A stretch of DNA of 64,000 bases from contig OX337233.1 in assembly GCA_946965045.2 (NCBI GenBank), positions 2,976,001 through 3,040,000 on the forward strand, in the 5' to 3' direction. Shown here piece by piece: positions 17,448-57,179 of the stretch (positions are counted from its first letter, which is position 1; each line of letters opens with the position of its first letter). The notes beneath the pieces are model-generated. The model made no database searches, was not told where the DNA came from, and saw nothing but the letters and a program-made list of their open reading frames with translations. The stretch comes from Epithemia pelagica (taxonomy: Eukaryota > Protista > Bacillariophyta). Both the position numbers and the translations under genes were made by a program.

Positions 17448-18788
17448 ATGACTCGGATACCGAGACCACCACCACCACCATCACAACTAGCTCAGCGAGT
17501 GGCCATTGGAACGGGCGGAAGCTTTTTATGGACGTTAATGTTATGTGGTGTATTGGCGACCCTCGTCAATGTCTTGTTTGAAGCTGGATCAACCATGGAA
17601 CCGACCCATTGGGCTTCCAAGTTTGATGTCATTCAAGGGGAACTCCTCTTGGAGGGACAACAACAACCGGGCAAGGGACAACACTTGCCCCTGCAACAAC
17701 TACAGCAGCAACAACTACCACAACGACTCCAATTACCGCTCGCCAATTCACAGGCCCTTCCACAACGACAAGAACCAAAAGTCCCCGAAAAGCATTTTAA
17801 TTGGGATAAAGTCAATCCCGAATTGGCACTGGATAAGGGTCCGATACTCAAACTGGTACAAGATGCCGGCATTACCGACATTGACGAGTCGGATTTGCAA
17901 AAGTTGCCCTCCTGGTCCGATGTCAAGTCGTTGTATGGCGAGGAGCCCATTATTTGGGGCTACCCCGAACAATGTAGCAAGTTTCAAAACCTTCCCAACA
18001 AGGCTCTCCATTTCATTTCTACCGCGGGTACCTTTAATACCGGAACCAACCTCATGTCGGAATTGTTGATTGCCAATTGTCATTTGCCGGACCATGAAAA
18101 GGAGTACAAGGGCGCAGGTGTTCGATGGCAAGTGATTTGGGGCAAACATACGCCCGTCAAGAATGAAACGTACCGATTGACACATCGAACGTACAAGGAT
18201 CCGAATTATTTGGCCGAAAACACCTTTCCTGTTGTCATGGTACGAGATCCCTACAAATGGATGCAATCCATGTGTCGACACAAATACGAAGCCAAATGGC
18301 TCAAGGATCCAGCAAATCCATTGCATTGTCCCAATTTAGTGTATCAAAATGACGCCAAACGACCCTTTAACGTAATGGTCAAGTACGCCAACTTTACCAC
18401 CCAATATACCTCGTTGGTGGAGTTGTGGAATGAATGGTATCAGGCCTATTTCGATGCGCCCTTTCCTCGTCTTGTGGTACGATTTGAAGATTTGATTTAC
18501 CATCCACGTGCCGTGGTTCAAAAGGCCTGTGAATGTGCCGGAGGCCAGTTGCGGAATAAATTTCGGTACATTGTCGAGTCGGCCAAAAAGGGAGAAAAGC
18601 AACATGGGCCACAAGCCCAACGAACGTCGTACTTGACGGCCTTGAGTCGGTATGGGACCAAAGAAGGGCGATACAAGGGATTTCAACCCAGCGACATGAA
18701 CTATGCTGGCCAACACCTTAATACGACGCTGATGCAGACCTTGGCCTATCCATTTCATGAAAATGCAATGCGGGAAGCCGACACATAA
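17448..18788 (+). CDS. Sulfotransferase-like type II membrane protein, tandem copy A
   Basis: N-terminal TM, GTFNTGTNL (PAPS loop-like), WGKH, VMVRDPYKWMQS, VVRFEDL. Confidence 0.75.
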   Translation: MTRIPRPPPPPSQLAQRVAIGTGGSFLWTLMLCGVLATLVNVLFEAGSTMEPTHWASKFDVIQGELLLEGQQQPGKGQHLPLQQLQQQQLPQRLQLPLANSQALPQRQEPKVPEKHFNWDKVNPELALDKGPILKLVQDAGITDIDESDLQKLPSWSDVKSLYGEEPIIWGYPEQCSKFQNLPNKALHFISTAGTFNTGTNLMSELLIANCHLPDHEKEYKGAGVRWQVIWGKHTPVKNETYRLTHRTYKDPNYLAENTFPVVMVRDPYKWMQSMCRHKYEAKWLKDPANPLHCPNLVYQNDAKRPFNVMVKYANFTTQYTSLVELWNEWYQAYFDAPFPRLVVRFEDLIYHPRAVVQKACECAGGQLRNKFRYIVESAKKGEKQHGPQAQRTSYLTALSRYGTKEGRYKGFQPSDMNYAGQHLNTTLMQTLAYPFHENAMREADT

Positions 18789-19528
18789 CAAAGTTTCAAT
18801 CTACTTCACAAACAGTTGACGAATGGAGTACAAGGATACTGAGCGCGTTTTGAGTAATTGGTGTAAATACAGAAAGCGAGAGGAATCTTGCTCGAGGACA
18901 GGAACGAAATTTTGACATTCCCTTGTTTCCAAAGCAAATTGCTAAAGGTTGTCAACAGGGATCTATTGTGATGTTGTAGTCATAGTTGATGCTCTCACTG
19001 CTCCTATTGTAGGGCTGCTCTTCGCCTATGCGACTGAAATTTGGAGTGTCTATGACGAGCCATTTCGATTCCTGTGCACGTTTAGCAACAACCCGTTGCG
19101 GTCCTTGTGTGTGGCAATGTGTCTTGTTCCGCGGAGTGATCATGTCCACGTTCGTTCCCATCCTGGCAAATGGATTGGTGTGTAGGATACATTCGTCATC
19201 TCCCATGTGAAATGTGAATGATGAATGGCGTGATTCCGCGAGAATACATTATGGAGGACGGAATCTTTGGTCCTGCGTCTGCGTGGGGCACAACTCCCCT
19301 CGCGTACAAGAATTAGAGAGGCATGCGCCGGGCCGTCTGAGGTCCAACACATTTCGTTAGACAAGTACATATGCCCATTCACGTCTCACGCAGACCGTCT
19401 CCCTGCTCTCATCAAACTTTGGCCACATTTGAAGACAATCAACAAAAAAGACCGTTCCGTTCTCTGGTGTTTGCGCATAACAACAGGAGAACGAGAAAGG
19501 GGCTTACAAGAAACACAAGACGGTCAGG

Positions 19529-20869
19529 ATGCGCTCTGTCAAGTCCATGAAAATGGTACACTTACGTAGGAGTCGGCGTGCAGGGATGATCAACCTCTGG
19601 CGTTTCTTGTTCAGTGGTTTGCTTGTGACCATGATGACCCTCTTGTATGAGGCGGGGACCACCTTGGAGGGACTGCACAAAACGGCTCAATTCGATCCAG
19701 TCCAAAGCTACGTGAACCATAATGAAAGTTTGGATGATGGTGGGAATACATCGTTGTTGTGGGACGACAAGACCGGGATAGCAGACGCCACCGACCCTGA
19801 TACATCCGATGCGGATACCACCCCTCCATCCAACCTCGATGAGGGCCATCTCAATTCCGAAATGGTACGAGACAAGGGTCCCCTTTTACAGTTGCTGCGA
19901 GAGGCTGGAATGGACGATCTGGATGAAGCAACCCTCAAGGCCCTTCCGACCTGGTCAAATGTAACGGATTTGTATGGCAAGGAGCCAGTGTTGCATGGAT
20001 TCCCCGAAGAATGCTCCAAGTTTCAGAGTCTACCCAATCCATCCCTTCATTTTATTGCCTCGGCCGGATCCTTTAATAGTGGTACCAATTTAATGGCGGA
20101 ACTCCTCATTCACAATTGTCACCTGCCCCAGCATGAGGGAGGACCGGGTGTGCGATGGCAAGTGCTGTGGGGCAAGCATACCCCGATTGCCAATGATACC
20201 TTTCGACTCGAGCACAAAACGTATAGCGATGAAAAGTACAAGGTTCCGGAAAATGTGTTCCCCGTTGTCATGGTACGAGATCCCTATCAATGGATGCAAG
20301 CACTGTGTCGGCATCATTACACGGCCACATGGCCCGTCGATCCTCACGACCCCGAGCATTGTCCCAATTTGGTGCGACAAGTAGCACAGGCAGGTGTCAC
20401 CAAGGAAACCTCACACTTCGACACTACCAATTCACAAACAACGTACAAAGTTACAGTCGTGTATCCCAATGTGACGACGCATCATGCCTCCATGGCGGAA
20501 TTCTGGAACGATTGGTACCGACCGTACACGGAGGCATTGTTTCCTCGATTAATGGTTCGATACGAAGATTTGCTGTATCATCCTCGTACCGTCGTTCAAC
20601 AGGCCTGTGAATGTGCCGGAGGCAAACTCAAAGCACGCTTTGAGTACATTACCAAATCCGCCAAAAAAGGTTTGGGAGGCCATGGCAAGGAACGAACCTC
20701 GTATCTCGATGCCTTGATTCGGTATGGAAGCGAACAAGGACGGTATAAGGGATTCTCCTCGGCCGATCTCGACTACCTGGCCACTCATTTGGATCGAACA
20801 ATGATGCAAAACATGGGATATTCCTTCCATTCCACTCATAAACCAGAACAACCGCAACTCCCCTTGTAG
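19529..20869 (+). CDS. Sulfotransferase-like type II membrane protein, tandem copy B
   Basis: GSFNSGTNL, WGKH, VMVRDPYQWMQA, MVRYEDL; colinear with copy A (QACECAGG shared). Confidence 0.75.
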   Translation: MRSVKSMKMVHLRRSRRAGMINLWRFLFSGLLVTMMTLLYEAGTTLEGLHKTAQFDPVQSYVNHNESLDDGGNTSLLWDDKTGIADATDPDTSDADTTPPSNLDEGHLNSEMVRDKGPLLQLLREAGMDDLDEATLKALPTWSNVTDLYGKEPVLHGFPEECSKFQSLPNPSLHFIASAGSFNSGTNLMAELLIHNCHLPQHEGGPGVRWQVLWGKHTPIANDTFRLEHKTYSDEKYKVPENVFPVVMVRDPYQWMQALCRHHYTATWPVDPHDPEHCPNLVRQVAQAGVTKETSHFDTTNSQTTYKVTVVYPNVTTHHASMAEFWNDWYRPYTEALFPRLMVRYEDLLYHPRTVVQQACECAGGKLKARFEYITKSAKKGLGGHGKERTSYLDALIRYGSEQGRYKGFSSADLDYLATHLDRTMMQNMGYSFHSTHKPEQPQLPL

Positions 20870-21166: not shown

Positions 21167-22857
<1,691 letters not shown>

Positions 22858-38499: not shown

Positions 38500-39036
38500 T
38501 CAACTGGAATCATTTCGTTTGATTGTTTCATCTCTCTTTCTCTTGTTTTCTAGAATCTCCAGCATTTGCTGGTCTTGATTTTGCACTTTGTTCGTGCGCC
38601 GCTCCCGATCCTGCAAGAGGACTGACTCCAACTGGATGAAACCAGCCTTGATTTCGTTCCGAAGTTCGTCCAAGCCTGTATTCATTTCGTTCCGAAGTTC
38701 GTCCAAGCCTGTATTCATTTCGTTCCCCAGTTCGTCCAAGCCTGCATTCATTTCGTCCAAGCCTGCCTTCATTTCGATCCGCATTTCATCAAGTTTGCGG
38801 TTGATTGGATAGGTCCCCACGTATGCCGAGACGGAACAAACCGCGATGCCACCGAGGACCGCCCCAAACAGATCCGTGACCCCGTAGCGCCGAATCAAGT
38901 CCCTACACAAGTCGTGGTCGGAAGACTCGGCGTTGTGGAGTTGACGACCGGCGGCGCCAGAGGATGTCGTCGTTGTCGTCCGGAAACGAACAGTGTTTGT
39001 GGAAAGACGGACAGGACGCATGGCACGGTGAAACAT
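38500..39036 (-). CDS. Small TM + coiled-coil protein with 33-bp (11-aa) repeats
   Basis: Basic MFHRAMR presequence-like N-terminus, TM LFGAVLGGIAVCSVSAYVG, repeats LDELRNEMNTG. Confidence 0.65.
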   Translation of the reverse strand: MFHRAMRPVRLSTNTVRFRTTTTTSSGAAGRQLHNAESSDHDLCRDLIRRYGVTDLFGAVLGGIAVCSVSAYVGTYPINRKLDEMRIEMKAGLDEMNAGLDELGNEMNTGLDELRNEMNTGLDELRNEIKAGFIQLESVLLQDRERRTNKVQNQDQQMLEILENKRKRDETIKRNDSS

Positions 39037-51176: not shown

Positions 51177-51686
51177 GCTAGAAAGCATTGTTTGGTTAGG
51201 AGTTGTAAGTTTTAACTACGGTGGTCGGTGGTGGGCACCTCGCAGAACTAGGTAAGCTAGGAAACCCGGATGTTTTCCCATGAAACGACCCTTACTGCTG
51301 ATTTTTTGATACTCGCACTTCTTTTTACTTCCTACTTGTAACTCTTTCGTTCTTCTAGGTAGATTCATTCGGAGTATTTAAGTTTCAATTAATAGGTTTG
51401 CCCGCCTAGCCGCAGAGAGTCTAAAAGTAAGTACGCTTAGGAGTACTTGTTACCGTATACTCCTGTCAAACAAAAACAACAACAGCCATTGACAATCCTG
51501 ACACAAAATTCTGGGACACCCGCTATATTTGTAACCATGACCCCACTGGGCTTATTTCTGATTGGTTGAGATGACTGTACCCGATTTTTGTACACTATCA
51601 AAAGAGGAACCGGCACGTGTCTAAAAAATTACTTAAATGTACCAATTATTGAACTTCGGGAAGCCTTGCGCTGAGCTCGCCAAATG

Positions 51687-51876
51687 TATCGGATTCTGTA
51701 TCGATGCACATACAACTGTATCCAGTCGTGTATCGGGGTTGTATCTAGTTGTATCGGGGGGCTTAGGTACTGTATCGATACAACGGATTTGTAACCGTAT
51801 TTGTATCGGGGGACTCGAGTCCTCTGTATCGGGTCTTCCGAATTTGTTGCGATTTGTATCGGCCTGATGTATCGGG
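51687..51876 (+). repeat. Left subterminal array of about 11 (T)GTATC(GG) motifs
   Basis: Repeated tgtatcgg/tgtatcga at irregular spacing. Confidence 0.85.
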
Positions 51877-52101
51877 TTGACGGTCACCATGGAATAAACA
51901 GGCGACTTTTGAAATGAGAGCGATACAAGATGGAATAAACAGGCGACTTTTGAAATGAGAGCGATACAATGATAAAGCGATGGATCAAGCAATCGAAGAA
52001 TTGGTTCCTGCCAAACTCGCCAATGAAATTGCTTGCGACAACAGCAACACAACAATCAGACTCATTTTTCAAGACGAAAGCAAGAAGAAGAAGTCGCAAT
52101 C

Positions 52102-52548
52102 ATGGCCGAGAAGAAGAAACCGAAGGTTTACCCCGCCGACCGGAAGGGAGCCAAGATCCGGATTGTTGGTGGGACGTACCGTGGAAAGAGGGGCTTCCTC
52201 GACAAGAAGAAGGGCAGGACAGAGTTCTTTACCTACGTCATTATCGTCATCAAGCCGAACGAGGAGGAGATTGCAACACGGCTTCATCACGAATCGATCC
52301 GAGTCGGAGAGGAAGCACCACCGGCAAGCTATGAAGAGGCTGTTCTCCAGCAGCACTGTGACATTGAAGAGCTGCTACGCGACCTTACGAGGAGGCTGTC
52401 CCAGTGTGAGGGCATCTCCTCCGAAGGAGAAGCTGGCCATCGGATTGGGAACTTGTTCCTAAATTATTTGACGGTTGCTGTGCAACGTCAAAGTAACCTA
52501 CGTGTGGACAAGGCTCGTTGGCGTCGTGTGCGCTATGGTCACGGTTAA
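52102..52548 (+). CDS. Transposon ORF1, small KOW-motif protein
   Basis: KGAKIRIVGGTYRGKRGFL resembles KOW; intact 148-aa ORF inside the TIRs. Confidence 0.7.
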   Translation: MAEKKKPKVYPADRKGAKIRIVGGTYRGKRGFLDKKKGRTEFFTYVIIVIKPNEEEIATRLHHESIRVGEEAPPASYEEAVLQQHCDIEELLRDLTRRLSQCEGISSEGEAGHRIGNLFLNYLTVAVQRQSNLRVDKARWRRVRYGHG

Positions 52549-52690
52549 TGCAACATCATGGTCAATGCAAATTCTCAACTAATATAGGATAAAGGAAGAT
52601 TACTAACTACTCGTCAATGTAGAAACTCTCATCATGTAAAAACTCATCATGTAAAAACTCATCATGTAAACACTCGTAGGAATTGGTGGC

Positions 52691-54145
52691 TTACAAGTCA
52701 CCAAACATGTTCTTGGCAGCCTCCGCATTCTTCTTGCCTTTGGTGGCAATCTTGGTGCCACCCTTGCATGCAATGCGCCAAAAGATAGTCATACCAAGGA
52801 GATCACGGCCGAAATCATTCTCCGAGTCATTTGATTTCATTTTGATGGGGTTGTACTCCGTAGGGATGACAGTCTCATCCTTGGAGAAAATCTGGTTGTC
52901 GAGTTTGATGGACGGGTGAAAGGCAAACCTATAGTGGGCCCAGTAGCTGCCATCGTCAGAATCCTCAATAGCCACCATAGTAGCACTATGGGCCTTCTTT
53001 GTAGCGGCACACTTGATCTTGGACAACTTCTCGTCCTTGTGGTACCGCTCGGGATCGCGGATCCAGAAGTCCTGCGCCGGCCCCCTCATCGAGATTAAAC
53101 GACCACGCCAGCTTTCTCCGAAAACATCGTCGGGAATGCTCGCATCCCATAAATGATGGTCCTGGCAAGGGACTGAACGGCGTAAGTGGAAGCCGTTGCG
53201 AGTGAAAAGTTCGTCCTGGTCGATCCCTTCAACGTATTGAATGTCGAAATCTCTGTTACGTTCGGCACACAAATGGTTGACGGCGATTATCCAAGGGTGC
53301 TTGACCGTCCCATTTTGATTCACCAACCAACTTGTCGGAACAAATGGGTGCAACACGTCGTTAGGCAGTTGTGGGGGACGAGGAGGGATACGAGAAAGAA
53401 GTGGAGACACCCTCCCGAAGACATGTTGCGGTGGATCACCTCCATTGAGGTCAACACCAGGGACAGCATAAGCGGCGGCAACGTTGTGGCGTGCTGGGCT
53501 GGGACTTGCGAAGAAGTTGGAGGCGTTTACCTGTCCCATCTGCTGATCGTGGGCATCGTGGGCATCGTTGCCAAGAAACACCGCCGGTGATTCTCCTCCC
53601 TTCACAGGTGTGCGGTTGAGATTGCGGGGAGCTGGCTTCCTGTCGTCGTCTTGCTCAGCCATGCCAGCAGCATAATCTTGATCACCATACAAGCGCCCAT
53701 AAGCGTCCTTGTACATCTGCTCCTCTTCGGGGCTGACGTCGTCGGCAACATCAGTGGTGTAAGTGTCATTGTCGGAAATCTTGTTGCTCTTCATGGTTCC
53801 TGACTCTTTGTTTTCAAGTTCTTTGAGAGTCTTCTCGTTTGGATCAACTCCCAGTCGATGGAGGTAGTTGACGTAGGCTTGGATGGACCGGGACTTGCAC
53901 TTGCCCCAGCGAAGTTGTACTTGACGTCGCTTCAACGAGCCTTCAAATCCCCAGTCGGTGGGATTATTACTGCAAAACGAAAGGAGATCAAAGGAGTGTC
54001 TCGACTGGCCTTGTTTTTCGATGGCCTTGATTAATTTTCTTGTTTGGTCAAACGGCAATCCACCTGGAGCGGGGAACTTGGCTGGCCTCTTTGGCGGTGG
54101 TTTCTTCTCTTCGTCCAATTTATGATCATGTTGTTGCTCTGTCAT
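52691..54145 (-). CDS. Transposon ORF2, 484-aa protein of unknown function
   Basis: Intact ORF with a basic helical N-terminus, disordered middle and globular C-terminus (PWIIAV..RNGFHL..GRLISMRGP). Confidence 0.75.
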   Translation of the reverse strand: MTEQQHDHKLDEEKKPPPKRPAKFPAPGGLPFDQTRKLIKAIEKQGQSRHSFDLLSFCSNNPTDWGFEGSLKRRQVQLRWGKCKSRSIQAYVNYLHRLGVDPNEKTLKELENKESGTMKSNKISDNDTYTTDVADDVSPEEEQMYKDAYGRLYGDQDYAAGMAEQDDDRKPAPRNLNRTPVKGGESPAVFLGNDAHDAHDQQMGQVNASNFFASPSPARHNVAAAYAVPGVDLNGGDPPQHVFGRVSPLLSRIPPRPPQLPNDVLHPFVPTSWLVNQNGTVKHPWIIAVNHLCAERNRDFDIQYVEGIDQDELFTRNGFHLRRSVPCQDHHLWDASIPDDVFGESWRGRLISMRGPAQDFWIRDPERYHKDEKLSKIKCAATKKAHSATMVAIEDSDDGSYWAHYRFAFHPSIKLDNQIFSKDETVIPTEYNPIKMKSNDSENDFGRDLLGMTIFWRIACKGGTKIATKGKKNAEAAKNMFGDL

Positions 54146-54413
54146 GATAGAAAATCAATGATCCAACAATCAACGAGAGAAGTAGACAGGTTTGCGAAGC
54201 GCAAGCCATTCCCTCTTGATCCAACATGCTCCTCTTGTGTCGTTGGTTTGTCTACAGCTACTAATATCATAGGAATGTGTTTGATTGCTTGATCATAAGC
54301 AGTATTTTAGTTTACTTAGGGCAGATTGGTGTGTGTGGACCCACGGATCCTTCTACTCGTGTTCGGGATGAAGCACCTTTCCGCCAATTTGTGACACTAC
54401 TAGGGAATGAGCC

Positions 54414-55403
54414 ATGAAGGCTGTCTTCCTTCCCCCAAGTTGGTCGCATCGGAATCTTCCTACTGTTCAACATAAAGAGAAGATGGTGCCACTGGTCGAG
54501 CCAGACGAGGTTCTCACGCGAGGCTTAGCTTATCTCTCCTTGGACGTGGATGGCCGTCTGACGAGGGAGCAACGCATCAACAAGTTCCAACAACACTATG
54601 GATCGGTGCCTCTTACAATTGCAACCATGTGGTATGACTTGTGCCATACGACAATTGAAGAGGCAAAGCTAAGTACTAAGGATAAACAAAAAGGCTTTCG
54701 CATGTTCATGGTTGCGCATTTCTTTATCTACAGCTATCCTCGAAGCAGCGTACAGCTTGGTGACAGGTTCCGAATTTGTGCGTGCAACGTCCGAGGCAAG
54801 AATCTCTGGAAATGGATTCGGAAGATCGCAGCGCTTGAGGAGAAGGTAATTTTCTGGCCTCACGACCTGAACAATCCTGACTCGGAGATTTTCGCGCTAT
54901 CTGTGGATGGTGTTGATAAGAAAACGTGGGAACGAAAGCACAAGACTGAACTGCTTCCGTTTGATCGACGAAATTTCTCACAGAAGCATGCGCACGGTGG
55001 AGTGAAATATCAAATCACTCTATGTGCATATCGCCAGCAAGTCGTGGATATCTTTGGACCAGTGCGCGGAGGCATGGGTGACAAGGAGATGCTCGAGAGG
55101 TCTGGTGTGCTGGAGCACCTCGCGGATGGAAAAAAGGTTGTGGCTGATCGCGGTTACATCAAGAATGCTTTCCGCGACAAGGTTGCTTGGCCCAACCCAC
55201 AACACGATTCAAGGATGGCGAACAATATTAAGAGTCGCATCCGCCTGCGACACGAATCGTTCAACGGAAAAATGTCTACCTTTGCCTCCATGCACCAAAC
55301 TTGGAGGCACAGCGACACGAATCATGGACTTGCCTTTCGAGCTGTCGCTGTTACGTTGCAATATGCCATGAACAATGGCAGCTCTCATCTCTTTCAACCC
55401 TAA
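54414..55403 (+). CDS. Harbinger-type DDE transposase (DDE_Tnp_4-like)
   Basis: LSVDGVD, FSQKH..GVKYQI, GPVRGGMGD, VADRGY, R.RHESFNG, WRH..H..AF.AV match the PIF/Harbinger nuclease layout. Confidence 0.9.
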   Translation: MKAVFLPPSWSHRNLPTVQHKEKMVPLVEPDEVLTRGLAYLSLDVDGRLTREQRINKFQQHYGSVPLTIATMWYDLCHTTIEEAKLSTKDKQKGFRMFMVAHFFIYSYPRSSVQLGDRFRICACNVRGKNLWKWIRKIAALEEKVIFWPHDLNNPDSEIFALSVDGVDKKTWERKHKTELLPFDRRNFSQKHAHGGVKYQITLCAYRQQVVDIFGPVRGGMGDKEMLERSGVLEHLADGKKVVADRGYIKNAFRDKVAWPNPQHDSRMANNIKSRIRLRHESFNGKMSTFASMHQTWRHSDTNHGLAFRAVAVTLQYAMNNGSSHLFQP

Positions 55404-55448
55404 TGAATGTCTAAAGTAGAGAAAAGTTTGTTTGTGTTTTCTATTTGT

Positions 55449-56093
55449 TTACGTATAGTCTTGTATATGATTTGCCAAATCATGTCGTCGTCGCAGCTCA
55501 TCACAGGGGACAACAGGTCCTCGTCCTTGCTCCTCCTCGCGTTTCAGTGCCAGATAGTTGAAAAAACGTTGGCGGCGTGCTTCCTGGTAAATGCGGTGCT
55601 TGAAGATTGCTGGCTTAAAGTCTCTGTAGGCAGGACGTGTCCTTTGAAGCTCGGATGGCTTCAAGCGTAGGTGCACACCATTCTTCACATCCTGCCGAAG
55701 AAGCAGCTTTGCAGGGTGAAGGTCAAAGACAAGTTCACCTTTGTTGTTGTGTTGTTGTCTTGGATATAACCTTCTGTCATGAATAAGGGCCCTTTCGTCA
55801 CTTCTTGCCCTTTCATTCGCGTAGTCTGCTTGGCGTCGATGATCCTGCAGCCGTGCCTTGAATTGTTGGAAGGGGACACCTTTGAACTCCGGGAGCCGCT
55901 TGTAAAACTTGAAAAGGTGGTCTGCCGGCACCATGTTCATGTTGTAGAGCAGACCACCTGGCTCCAAATCCTCGATGAGGATCGCCCGCCCCTCGCATTT
56001 CCTCCAATCAACAAACTTCTCCTTCTCCTTCTCCTTCTTCGATACAGAGACCTGCTTGCTCATCCTCTTTCTTTGTCCACTACCTGGCGACAA
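55449..56093 (-). CDS. Transposon ORF4, basic protein with two internal helical repeats (candidate DNA-binding partner)
   Basis: WRKCEGRAILIEDL..EFKGVPFQQFKARLQDHRRQ parallels FDLHPAKLLLRQDV..AYRDFKPAIFKHRIYQEARRQ. Confidence 0.7.
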   Translation of the reverse strand: MSPGSGQRKRMSKQVSVSKKEKEKEKFVDWRKCEGRAILIEDLEPGGLLYNMNMVPADHLFKFYKRLPEFKGVPFQQFKARLQDHRRQADYANERARSDERALIHDRRLYPRQQHNNKGELVFDLHPAKLLLRQDVKNGVHLRLKPSELQRTRPAYRDFKPAIFKHRIYQEARRQRFFNYLALKREEEQGRGPVVPCDELRRRHDLANHIQDYT

Positions 56094-56211
56094 AAAAGGT
56101 TGGTTGTTGTGTCGTGTTCCATTTCGTCGATCGTTGTCGATAACTTCGACGTGTTTTGCGATCTCGTTTTGTGAAGCTCATTTTTGTTGTGAAGACTCAT
56201 TCTTGTTGTTG

Positions 56212-56390
56212 TATCGGGTGTGTGTATCGGGGTTTCGTCGATTTGTATCGGTTGTATCGACCCCCGTGTATCGTTTGTATCGGGGTTGTATCGGTTGTAT
56301 CGGGTTGTATCGGGTTGTATCGGAATTTGTATCGGTTGTATCGGATGTTGTTTCGACCAGTTGTATGGTTTGTATCGGGTTGTATCGACC
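56212..56390 (+). repeat. Right subterminal array of about 14 (T)GTATC(GG) motifs
   Basis: ttgtatcgg(g) repeated near-tandemly, on the same strand as the left array. Confidence 0.9.
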
Positions 56391-56667
56391 CTCGCCAAAT
56401 GTTCCGATTCGTGTATTTTCCTCTCTATGTATTCTAATATACAGAAATATCAATGTCGATAAGTATTTTGTTCTATTATAGTGTACCAAAAAGAAAATAA
56501 GCTTGTCCGTCCTTCGCCCTTTTTGGTATATTCTGTTCAAGGTCCATAAGCACTATGGTTACAAAAATAGCGGGTGTCCCTGGGAGTCGAGGGTCGAGGA
56601 GCAACAAGCTTTTGGTTCTCTTCCGTACCATCTCGTGTTGACCATTTCTCACTGTTCTGGAATAGCA

Positions 56668-57179
56668 ATGTTTCACCGTGCAATCCGTCATCCTCTGACA
56701 CTGTCAAATCCGATATTGACACCTTGTTTGAAAAATTTGCCGAGCGCTACGGGATCGACGGTCTCTTCCGCGTGGCCGTGGGTTGCTCCGCGGTAATCTC
56801 CGTCTCCATATTCTTGGGGACATATACTGTCAACCACAAGATCGATGGGTTGAAGAACGACACTACTTTCAAGATTGCAGAGACCAACCTTAAGATCGAT
56901 GAATTGCGTAATGAATTGCGTAATGAAAGTAATCAATTGCGTAATGAAATGAATCAATTGAGTAATGAAATGCGTAATGAAATGAATCAATTGAGTAATG
57001 AAATGAAGGCTGGCTTCGTCAGCATTCAGTCGGTCCTTTTGCAGGAGAGAGACTGGCACATGAAGCAACTCGAAAAACAAAACAAGACAATACTCGATGT
57101 TCAAAAGACCAACGCCGAACATACTCAACAAATTAATGCACTTCTCGCTTCATCGGCTGACAAAGACAAGTCAGGATAA
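56668..57179 (+). pseudogene. Paralog of the 38500-39036 TM/coiled-coil gene with a 5' frameshift
   Basis: ATG at 56668 (MFHRAIR, matching MFHRAMR) is out of frame with the body (RYGIDGLF..GTYTVNHKID..NEMKAGFVSIQSVLLQER); 33-bp repeats. Confidence 0.65.

Follow-up and report, generated by a model that had tools for sequence, protein, structure and literature searches.

A recently mobile PHIS transposon with four genes in the diatom Epithemia pelagica

Introduction

Can the machinery of a Harbinger transposon be spread over four genes? Transposons of the Harbinger/PHIS superfamily are standard two-protein transposons in which the role of the partner protein is partly understood, and textbook Harbingers carry one gene besides the transposase. 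The question is raised by a locus in a stretch of 64,000 nucleotides of the diatom Epithemia pelagica (assembly GCA_946965045.2, contig OX337233.1, positions 2,976,001 to 3,040,000), hereafter the window, whose coordinates are used throughout. A first-pass annotation had proposed an intact Harbinger-superfamily element with four open reading frames (ORFs), terminal inverted repeats (TIRs) and a CTG target-site duplication (TSD). The analysis confirmed a real, recently inserted and recently mobile cut-and-paste element. The reading that we favour, and consider rather likely, is that of an autonomous PHIS transposon of a diatom-associated lineage with its machinery spread over four genes.

Insertion and mobility of the element

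Read with a 3-bp TSD, the element extends from 51514 to 56579 and has a length of 5,066 bp. The annotated 25-bp TIRs with one mismatch and the identical CTG flanks were recovered (Table 1), and the inverted arms 51513-51538 and 56555-56580 are 96% complementary. The annotation had suggested looking for an empty site, and contigs of two public sequencing runs indeed join 51510 exactly to 56580. The 5,069 skipped bases correspond to the element and one CTG (5,066 + 3). In run X3, the empty joint had a depth of 86.6, that of a single haplotype; a heterozygous site nearby had 87.6 of 172.6. The empty allele is either the pre-insertion site or the product of a precise excision; Harbingers typically excise precisely (PMC2836001).

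The window locus is identical to L006 of the ENA assembly ERZ21939226. Three other insertions (L005, L007 and L008) have unrelated flanks; over their full length they are 98.7-99.8% identical, and similarity among the copies ends at the TIRs. A near-identical transposase (P0001) is located on a fifth contig. The empty site and the independent copies with different flanks rule out a chance inverted repeat or an assembly artefact. The duplication is also consistent in other copies: complete insertions from four families have a CWG TSD in 11 of 11 cases (6 CTG, 5 CAG), and the middle base W agrees between both flanks in all of them. All targets being CWG, TIRs starting with GGG and a 1-bp duplication of W fit equally well. 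All families share the TIR tip, which reads GGACACCC or GAACACC.

The annotation as a young element was borne out: the near-identity of the copies and an insertion that is polymorphic with an empty allele indicate recent mobility. The element may still be active today. Single element contigs of run X1 had a depth of ~610 versus ~120 for a flank contig; a rough reading gives about ten haploid-equivalent copies, a depth-based figure that is not to be taken as copy number.

Individual copies carry further changes. L008 is damaged by a stop in ORF1 and by G>A at 55254, which changes the catalytic E281 to K (codon position calculated). The right flank of this copy (L008:12167-12180) reads CCTGGGTGTCC, like the TIR end of an element from this lineage, and L008 may have inserted into the end of a related element; a partner for the TIR-like flank was not found within that locus. 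The 41-bp tandem duplication upstream of ORF1 is a single unit in L005. At the start of this duplication (window 51889), the same loose contig end was present in three runs and suggests a nested insertion there in one copy of the family. In run X1, contigs also had loose ends on either side of window position 51480, which is 33 bp to the left of the element; they point to another insertion at this position in the X1 sample.

Affiliation of the transposase

The transposase matches DDE_Tnp_4 (PF13359) with an expect value (E) of 2e-11, above the cut-off, and the domain was found in 29 of 29 aligned relatives. The catalytic triad, D165 (54906), D245 (55146) and E281 (55254), is invariant in these relatives, in agreement with the annotated Harbinger-superfamily DDE transposase. 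Weak matches to IS4/IS5 NCBIfam families were present among the relatives. The element combines the features that were tested for PHIS transposons: an IS5-like DDE_Tnp_4 protein with the catalytic triad, and TIRs with a TSD of 0-3 bp. The protein length is ~306-329 aa; relatives have ~300-308 aa, which makes M24 at 54483 the probable true start.

Close relatives of the transposase were absent from prokaryotic (GTDB) genomes, IMG/VR viral contigs, plasmids and phages. With no relative in these collections or among viral structures, an origin from a prokaryotic insertion sequence or a virus was rejected. PF04827 did not match the transposase. The profile of the transposase, compared with a fragment of a canonical Plant_tran Harbinger from the same assembly, gave no match (E 0.14), a weak hint at a branch other than canonical Harbinger. 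A canonical Plant_tran Harbinger transposase fragment of this assembly lies near a four-gene element (L013:11561-12226).

Conservation of the four-gene set

As annotated, four stop-free ORFs are arranged + - + - in the order ORF1, ORF2, transposase and ORF4 (Table 1). They had also been called apparently intronless; this holds as far as colinear protein alignments reach, which suggest four genes without introns.

Five further families in the assembly, with transposases 60-65% identical, have the same gene layout. The four genes are together in L002, L003, L005-L007, L009-L012, L014 and L015; L001 and L004 are truncated on the left, where copia-type sequence starts. Among the homologues, one alone has a named source, the diatom Epithemia clementina; there, a decayed element has the same gene order and a retroelement inside (L037). 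Three JGI contigs (L041-L043), found via an ORF2 homologue, have the full set in this order, and their transposase is 45% identical. Other orders were observed in L023 and L038 with all four genes and in L017, L020 and L022 with three of the four. The gene set stays together across transposases that are ~40-45% identical, and the few ORF2 relatives that were examined were traced to it (L037, L040 and L041-L043). A candidate ORF2 homologue at L038:12110-13630 was wrong and was dropped. The proposal of a distinct four-component lineage gained support from the same genes, some reordered, in five further families and in other samples, unrelated metagenome contigs among them.

Substitution rates at nonsynonymous (dN) and synonymous (dS) sites agree with selection on all four ORFs, one of the two explanations offered in the annotation, dN being far below dS for each. 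For L003 versus L009, dN and dS were 0.11 and 1.72 for ORF1, 0.31 and 1.78 for ORF2, 0.06 and 0.58 for the transposase and 0.09 and 0.56 for ORF4. The closest family pair has dN/dS ratios of ~0.06-0.17 across the four genes. Between families, synonymous sites are near saturation and proteins are 32-65% identical. At the sequence level, these values show purifying selection on all four genes. Gene-gene distance correlations (Spearman 0.4-0.69) are based on non-independent pairs and are descriptive only.

The genes are not equally close neighbours. In short contigs, the transposase has ORF4 as its most frequent neighbour, ORF1 and ORF2 usually remain a convergent pair (L023, L040), and the gene order is variable. 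A 2.16-kb relative bounded by TIRs (L027:230-2393, ends GAACACCCGGC) has the transposase and none of the accessory genes. The suggested test, whether the ORFs co-occur inside TIRs with CWG TSDs, was positive in the sister families and negative in L027. L027 may have arisen by deletion, or it may indicate that the extra genes are dispensable in cis. Its flanks read CAG and CTG, and it is possibly a collapsed metagenome contig. The uneven neighbourhood and L027 would suit a core of transposase and ORF4, with ORF1 and ORF2 as long-resident passengers or as a second, formerly independent module, kept for some benefit other than transposition. Purifying selection on all four genes at saturated dS, the cohesion of the set through rearrangements and across divergent transposases, and the return of checked ORF2 relatives to the gene set make such passengers very improbable.

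Two relatives have unusual structures. In a sister family, one copy of 8.46 kb (L012:854-9317) has normal ends and a CTG TSD, and an inverted internal duplication of its right arm, including part of ORF4, forms long foldback-like arms. The 37-kb contig L038 contains a four-gene element and a diatom-type copia, with an IS21-like istA/istB pair (17900-20600) beside them; the contig is either a chimeric assembly or evidence of a eukaryotic IS21-like element.

Table 1. Features of the element in window coordinates.
Feature	Position	Strand	Basis or remark
Left TSD, CTG	51511..51513	+	Window sequence; one CTG kept in the empty site
Left TIR, 25 bp, starts GGACACCC	51514..51538	+	Same end in L005, L007, L008 and sister families
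Left subterminal array, ~10 TGTATCGG-type motifs	51685..51875	+	Putative sites for an element-encoded binder
41-bp tandem duplication upstream of ORF1	51889..51969	+	Sequence repeat
ORF1, 148 aa from ATG, basic, isoelectric point (pI) 9.7	52102..52548	+	ORF, relatives
ORF2, 484 aa	52691..54145	-	ORF, relatives, model
ORF2 C-domain, residues ~277-470	52736..53317	-	Predicted HSP20/alpha-crystallin/CS beta-sandwich
ORF2 N-domain, residues ~28-115	53801..54064	-	Basic, three-helix, possibly helix-turn-helix (HTH)/Myb-like; lead only
DDE transposase, 329 aa	54414..55403	+	PF13359, triad
ORF4, 204 aa, basic, pI 9.9	55449..56063	-	Predicted two tandem three-helix HTH-like units
Right subterminal array, 14 TGTATCG motifs	56210..56388	+	Spacing often 9-12 bp; oriented like left array
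Right TIR	56555..56579	-	24 of 25 positions pair with left TIR
Right TSD, CTG	56580..56582	+	Window sequence, empty site

Predicted folds of the accessory proteins

Structure searches were run on predicted models of ORF2 and ORF4. For neither model did Foldseek return a match at E<=0.001, and searches of PDB sequences had no match for ORF1, ORF2 or ORF4. MADF had no Pfam match in the accessory families. Hhalign detected no relation among the ORF2 N-domain, ORF4, the ORF1 C-half and the transposase N-terminus.

The ORF2 family comprises 1,140 clusters at 50% identity and is without a Pfam name. The model has two confident domains with an acidic disordered linker between them. For the C-domain, the top Foldseek rows were small heat-shock proteins (sHSP), alpha-crystallin and CS domains at E ~0.05. 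A wide VIA search yielded Z values up to 6.8, and almost every one of the top 46 rows was an sHSP/CS fold; in a second look, the top 19 rows were all sHSP/CS with Z 4.4-6.6, followed by 3.5. The root-mean-square deviation to 2o30 was 2.4 over 73 of 81 residues, and the TM score to an Hsp20 cluster was 0.53. The predicted C-domain thus has an HSP20/alpha-crystallin/CS fold. A sequence match to PF00011 or CS was found in 0 of 80 members of the ORF2 family, and none in PDB sequences. A helical insertion in the C-domain carries conserved H369, C379 and H386, which are possibly a metal site. The basic, three-helical N-domain was modelled with a confidence score (pLDDT) of 96. It had weak matches to the Prospero homeodomain (Z 4.7), Reb1 (Z 4.0) and a DUF6818 cluster (0.79) and is possibly Myb-like.

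The confident model of ORF4 (pLDDT 90.9) consists of two three-helix units with a long helix between them. Best fold matches were FF domains, homeodomains and Myb/SANT-type DNA-binding domains with Z 4.1-5.3. These weak values suggest an HTH-class arrangement and allow no assignment to a family. Of the annotation as a basic protein with a duplicated domain, the basic character stands; the duplication is a feature of the model and weak in the sequence (hhalign E 0.037, probability 1.4%).

ORF1 appears to combine a beta-rich, possibly KOW/SH3-like N-half with a helical C-half. It had been annotated as a KOW protein, of which a weak, sub-threshold similarity is left (uL24 E=0.17; atlas score 0.77). 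It is probably a small basic adaptor.

A model for transposition

The subterminal regions are dense in short repeats. The TGTATCGG-type motif occurs 24 times in 452 subterminal bases versus 6 times in 58,934 bases outside the element. The motif differs from family to family (TGTATCGG, TGTTTCGA, GGTTTCGA, TGTTTCCA, TGTGGAT and TGTCACCGTT), pointing to a DNA binder encoded by the element. In Ping/Pong and Harbinger3_DR, the transposase requires a separate Myb-like protein, which binds subterminal motifs and the transposase and directs the latter to the nucleus (PMC2836001, PMC9710019). By analogy, the short transposase of the four-gene element may rely on partner proteins. ORF4 would read the ~10-bp-phased TGTATCGG arrays. 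As a guess from this analogy, it is the most likely reader because it is basic, has predicted tandem HTH-like units and is the most frequent neighbour of the transposase. Two families with a common GTTTCGA motif have ORF4 proteins 85% identical and ORF2 proteins only 63% identical, which also points to ORF4. ORF2 would be the counterpart of the Harbinger partner and hold the transposase on the two ends, probably as a scaffold with the predicted crystallin-fold domain for oligomerisation. ORF1 would act as a small basic adaptor. The transposase would cut both TIRs and insert the element by a staggered cut at CWG.

Several observations weigh against a four-gene machinery. The transposase-only L027 has been described above. 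Pfam did not match the families of ORF1, ORF2 or ORF4, so that Myb, SANT or HTH domains are not recognised there. The fold matches are modest: Z values of at most 5.3 for ORF4 and at most 4.7 for the ORF2 N-domain are in the range of common helical arrangements, and the ORF2 C-domain stays at Z <=6.8, below 8.

The location of the arrays allows a second explanation. They adjoin the outer promoters of ORF1 and ORF4 and are specific to the family. Transposase and one DNA-binding partner may suffice for transposition, and the other one or two genes may be a counter-silencing module: a sequence-specific HTH protein would bind the family's own repeats, and the crystallin-fold domain would recruit or shield chromatin factors, keeping the element expressed. 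This would resemble VANC of VANDAL elements, SET in HarbingerS and TET/JBP in PHISTA, and the latter two demonstrate that PHIS lineages have captured epigenetic genes before (PMC12730594). In Arabidopsis, an anti-silencing complex contains the Harbinger-derived HDP1 and HDP2 together with the alpha-crystallin-domain proteins IDM2 and IDM3 (PMC5339849), whose fold is also predicted for the ORF2 C-domain. However, neither a chromatin-enzyme domain nor a reader domain was detected in Pfam searches of the element proteins, the IDM case is an analogy only, drawn from host proteins, and plain transposition equally predicts subterminal binding arrays. We regard counter-silencing in place of a transposition role as possible, if on the unlikely side. 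The two functions could also be combined in an unnamed, widespread diatom PHIS lineage, in which a module of ORF4, ORF2 and ORF1 reads its own repeats and assembles the ends while the crystallin protein counters silencing as well; this is a doubtful proposition. If true, it would be a transposon-encoded parallel to, or the source of, the partnership of Harbinger and alpha-crystallin-domain proteins in the IDM complex.

Relationship to described transposons

The CWG target is shared with NuwaI (PMC4482050), which also has a DDE_Tnp_4 transposase and a similar length (mean ~4.5 kb). NuwaI TIRs have 12-61 bp and usually start with GGG; the element has 25 bp with GGA after CWG, or GAA in family L002. 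Of the two ORFs in NuwaI, the second encodes a recognisable Myb/SANT domain, whereas the element has four ORFs and no Pfam-detectable Myb. NuwaI is known only from animals, although Thalassiosira pseudonana, T. oceanica and Phaeodactylum tricornutum were included in the screen (Han 2015; PMC4482050), and Nuwa clusters with canonical Harbinger (PMC12730594). Membership in NuwaI fails on gene number, Myb/SANT domain and animal host.

Canonical PIF/Harbinger elements (Ping/Pong, Harbinger3_DR) share DDE_Tnp_4, a 3-bp TSD, short TIRs, subterminal motifs and a separately encoded helical partner. They differ by a TWA target, two genes and a transposase of 400-500 aa; in the element, the large partner has a predicted crystallin-fold domain and a PF04827 match is missing. 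The CTG or CAG duplications of 11/11 insertions, not TWA, and four genes instead of two rule out this group. HarbingerS of oomycetes and PHISTA of rust fungi are PHIS lineages with extra genes (PMC12730594), a SET methyltransferase and a TET/JBP dioxygenase, respectively. Neither SET nor TET is present in the element. Membership in HarbingerS was rejected by the lack of a SET match in Pfam or fold searches. Pangu/Harbinger2, ISL2EU and Spy have a PHIS-type DDE transposase and TIRs often starting with GG. Their TSDs are ANT, AT and none, and PHISTA has TA; CWG excludes all four. The partner in ISL2EU is a YqaJ exonuclease, unlike in the element. The Arabidopsis IDM complex (HDP1, HDP2, IDM2 and IDM3) also unites nuclease-like, Myb-like and alpha-crystallin parts, but these are domesticated host genes, and crystallin subunits have not been reported as transposon-encoded. 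In the element, the predicted crystallin fold is fused to a three-helix domain within a mobile unit.

New are three conserved accessory genes that match no named family; the PHIS superfamily and the CWG target (NuwaI) were known. The lineage may already be catalogued in Repbase, as a Harbinger/HarbingerS-related, Harbinger2 or Nuwa-like family of diatoms, oomycetes or red algae. Novelty would then be lost and the mechanism kept. Repbase has stramenopile and red-algal PHIS families (Harbinger1-4_TP, HarbingerS and many Harbinger_CCri), and CWG duplications have been described. On the other hand, a literature search, with Repbase Reports and most subscription journals outside its scope, found no four-gene or crystallin-bearing Harbinger, and the animal restriction of NuwaI in the diatom-inclusive screen points the same way. 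Harbinger4_TP has different TSDs and termini, and the Ectocarpus Harbingers are all two-gene elements with TNA/ANT TSDs (PMC12477816). A catalogued lineage is quite unlikely on this evidence.

An intact, polymorphic and apparently intron-free four-gene element is easy to express, and the division of labour in a multi-subunit transpososome becomes directly testable. The predicted crystallin-fold domain in a partner protein is a link to plant anti-silencing complexes. The 1,140 unnamed clusters of the ORF2 family suggest that such elements are behind many diatom genes now called 'hypothetical'. Work on diatoms could also gain an insertion tool from a native transposon that targets CWG and is probably active.

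Further observations at the locus

An Rfam search provided no match to a non-coding RNA, and a search for RNA runs found none. In run X2, whose library type is unrecorded, single contigs at 52476-52804 and 54963-55827, near the 3' ends of convergent genes, were 3-5x deeper than over ORF2 or the 5' half of the transposase. The pattern could be due to RNA content and was not counted as expression.

The coiled-coil gene at 38500-39036 has an apparently frameshifted paralogue (56574-57179), and the element is located ~90 bp upstream of this paralogue. Near 56690, reads have a 7-bp indel; it was considered as the difference between an intact and a broken allele of the downstream gene, which was rejected, as neither version has a long frame starting with ATG. 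The window also encodes an ordinary polyubiquitin gene of 228-bp tandem units at 21167-22540.

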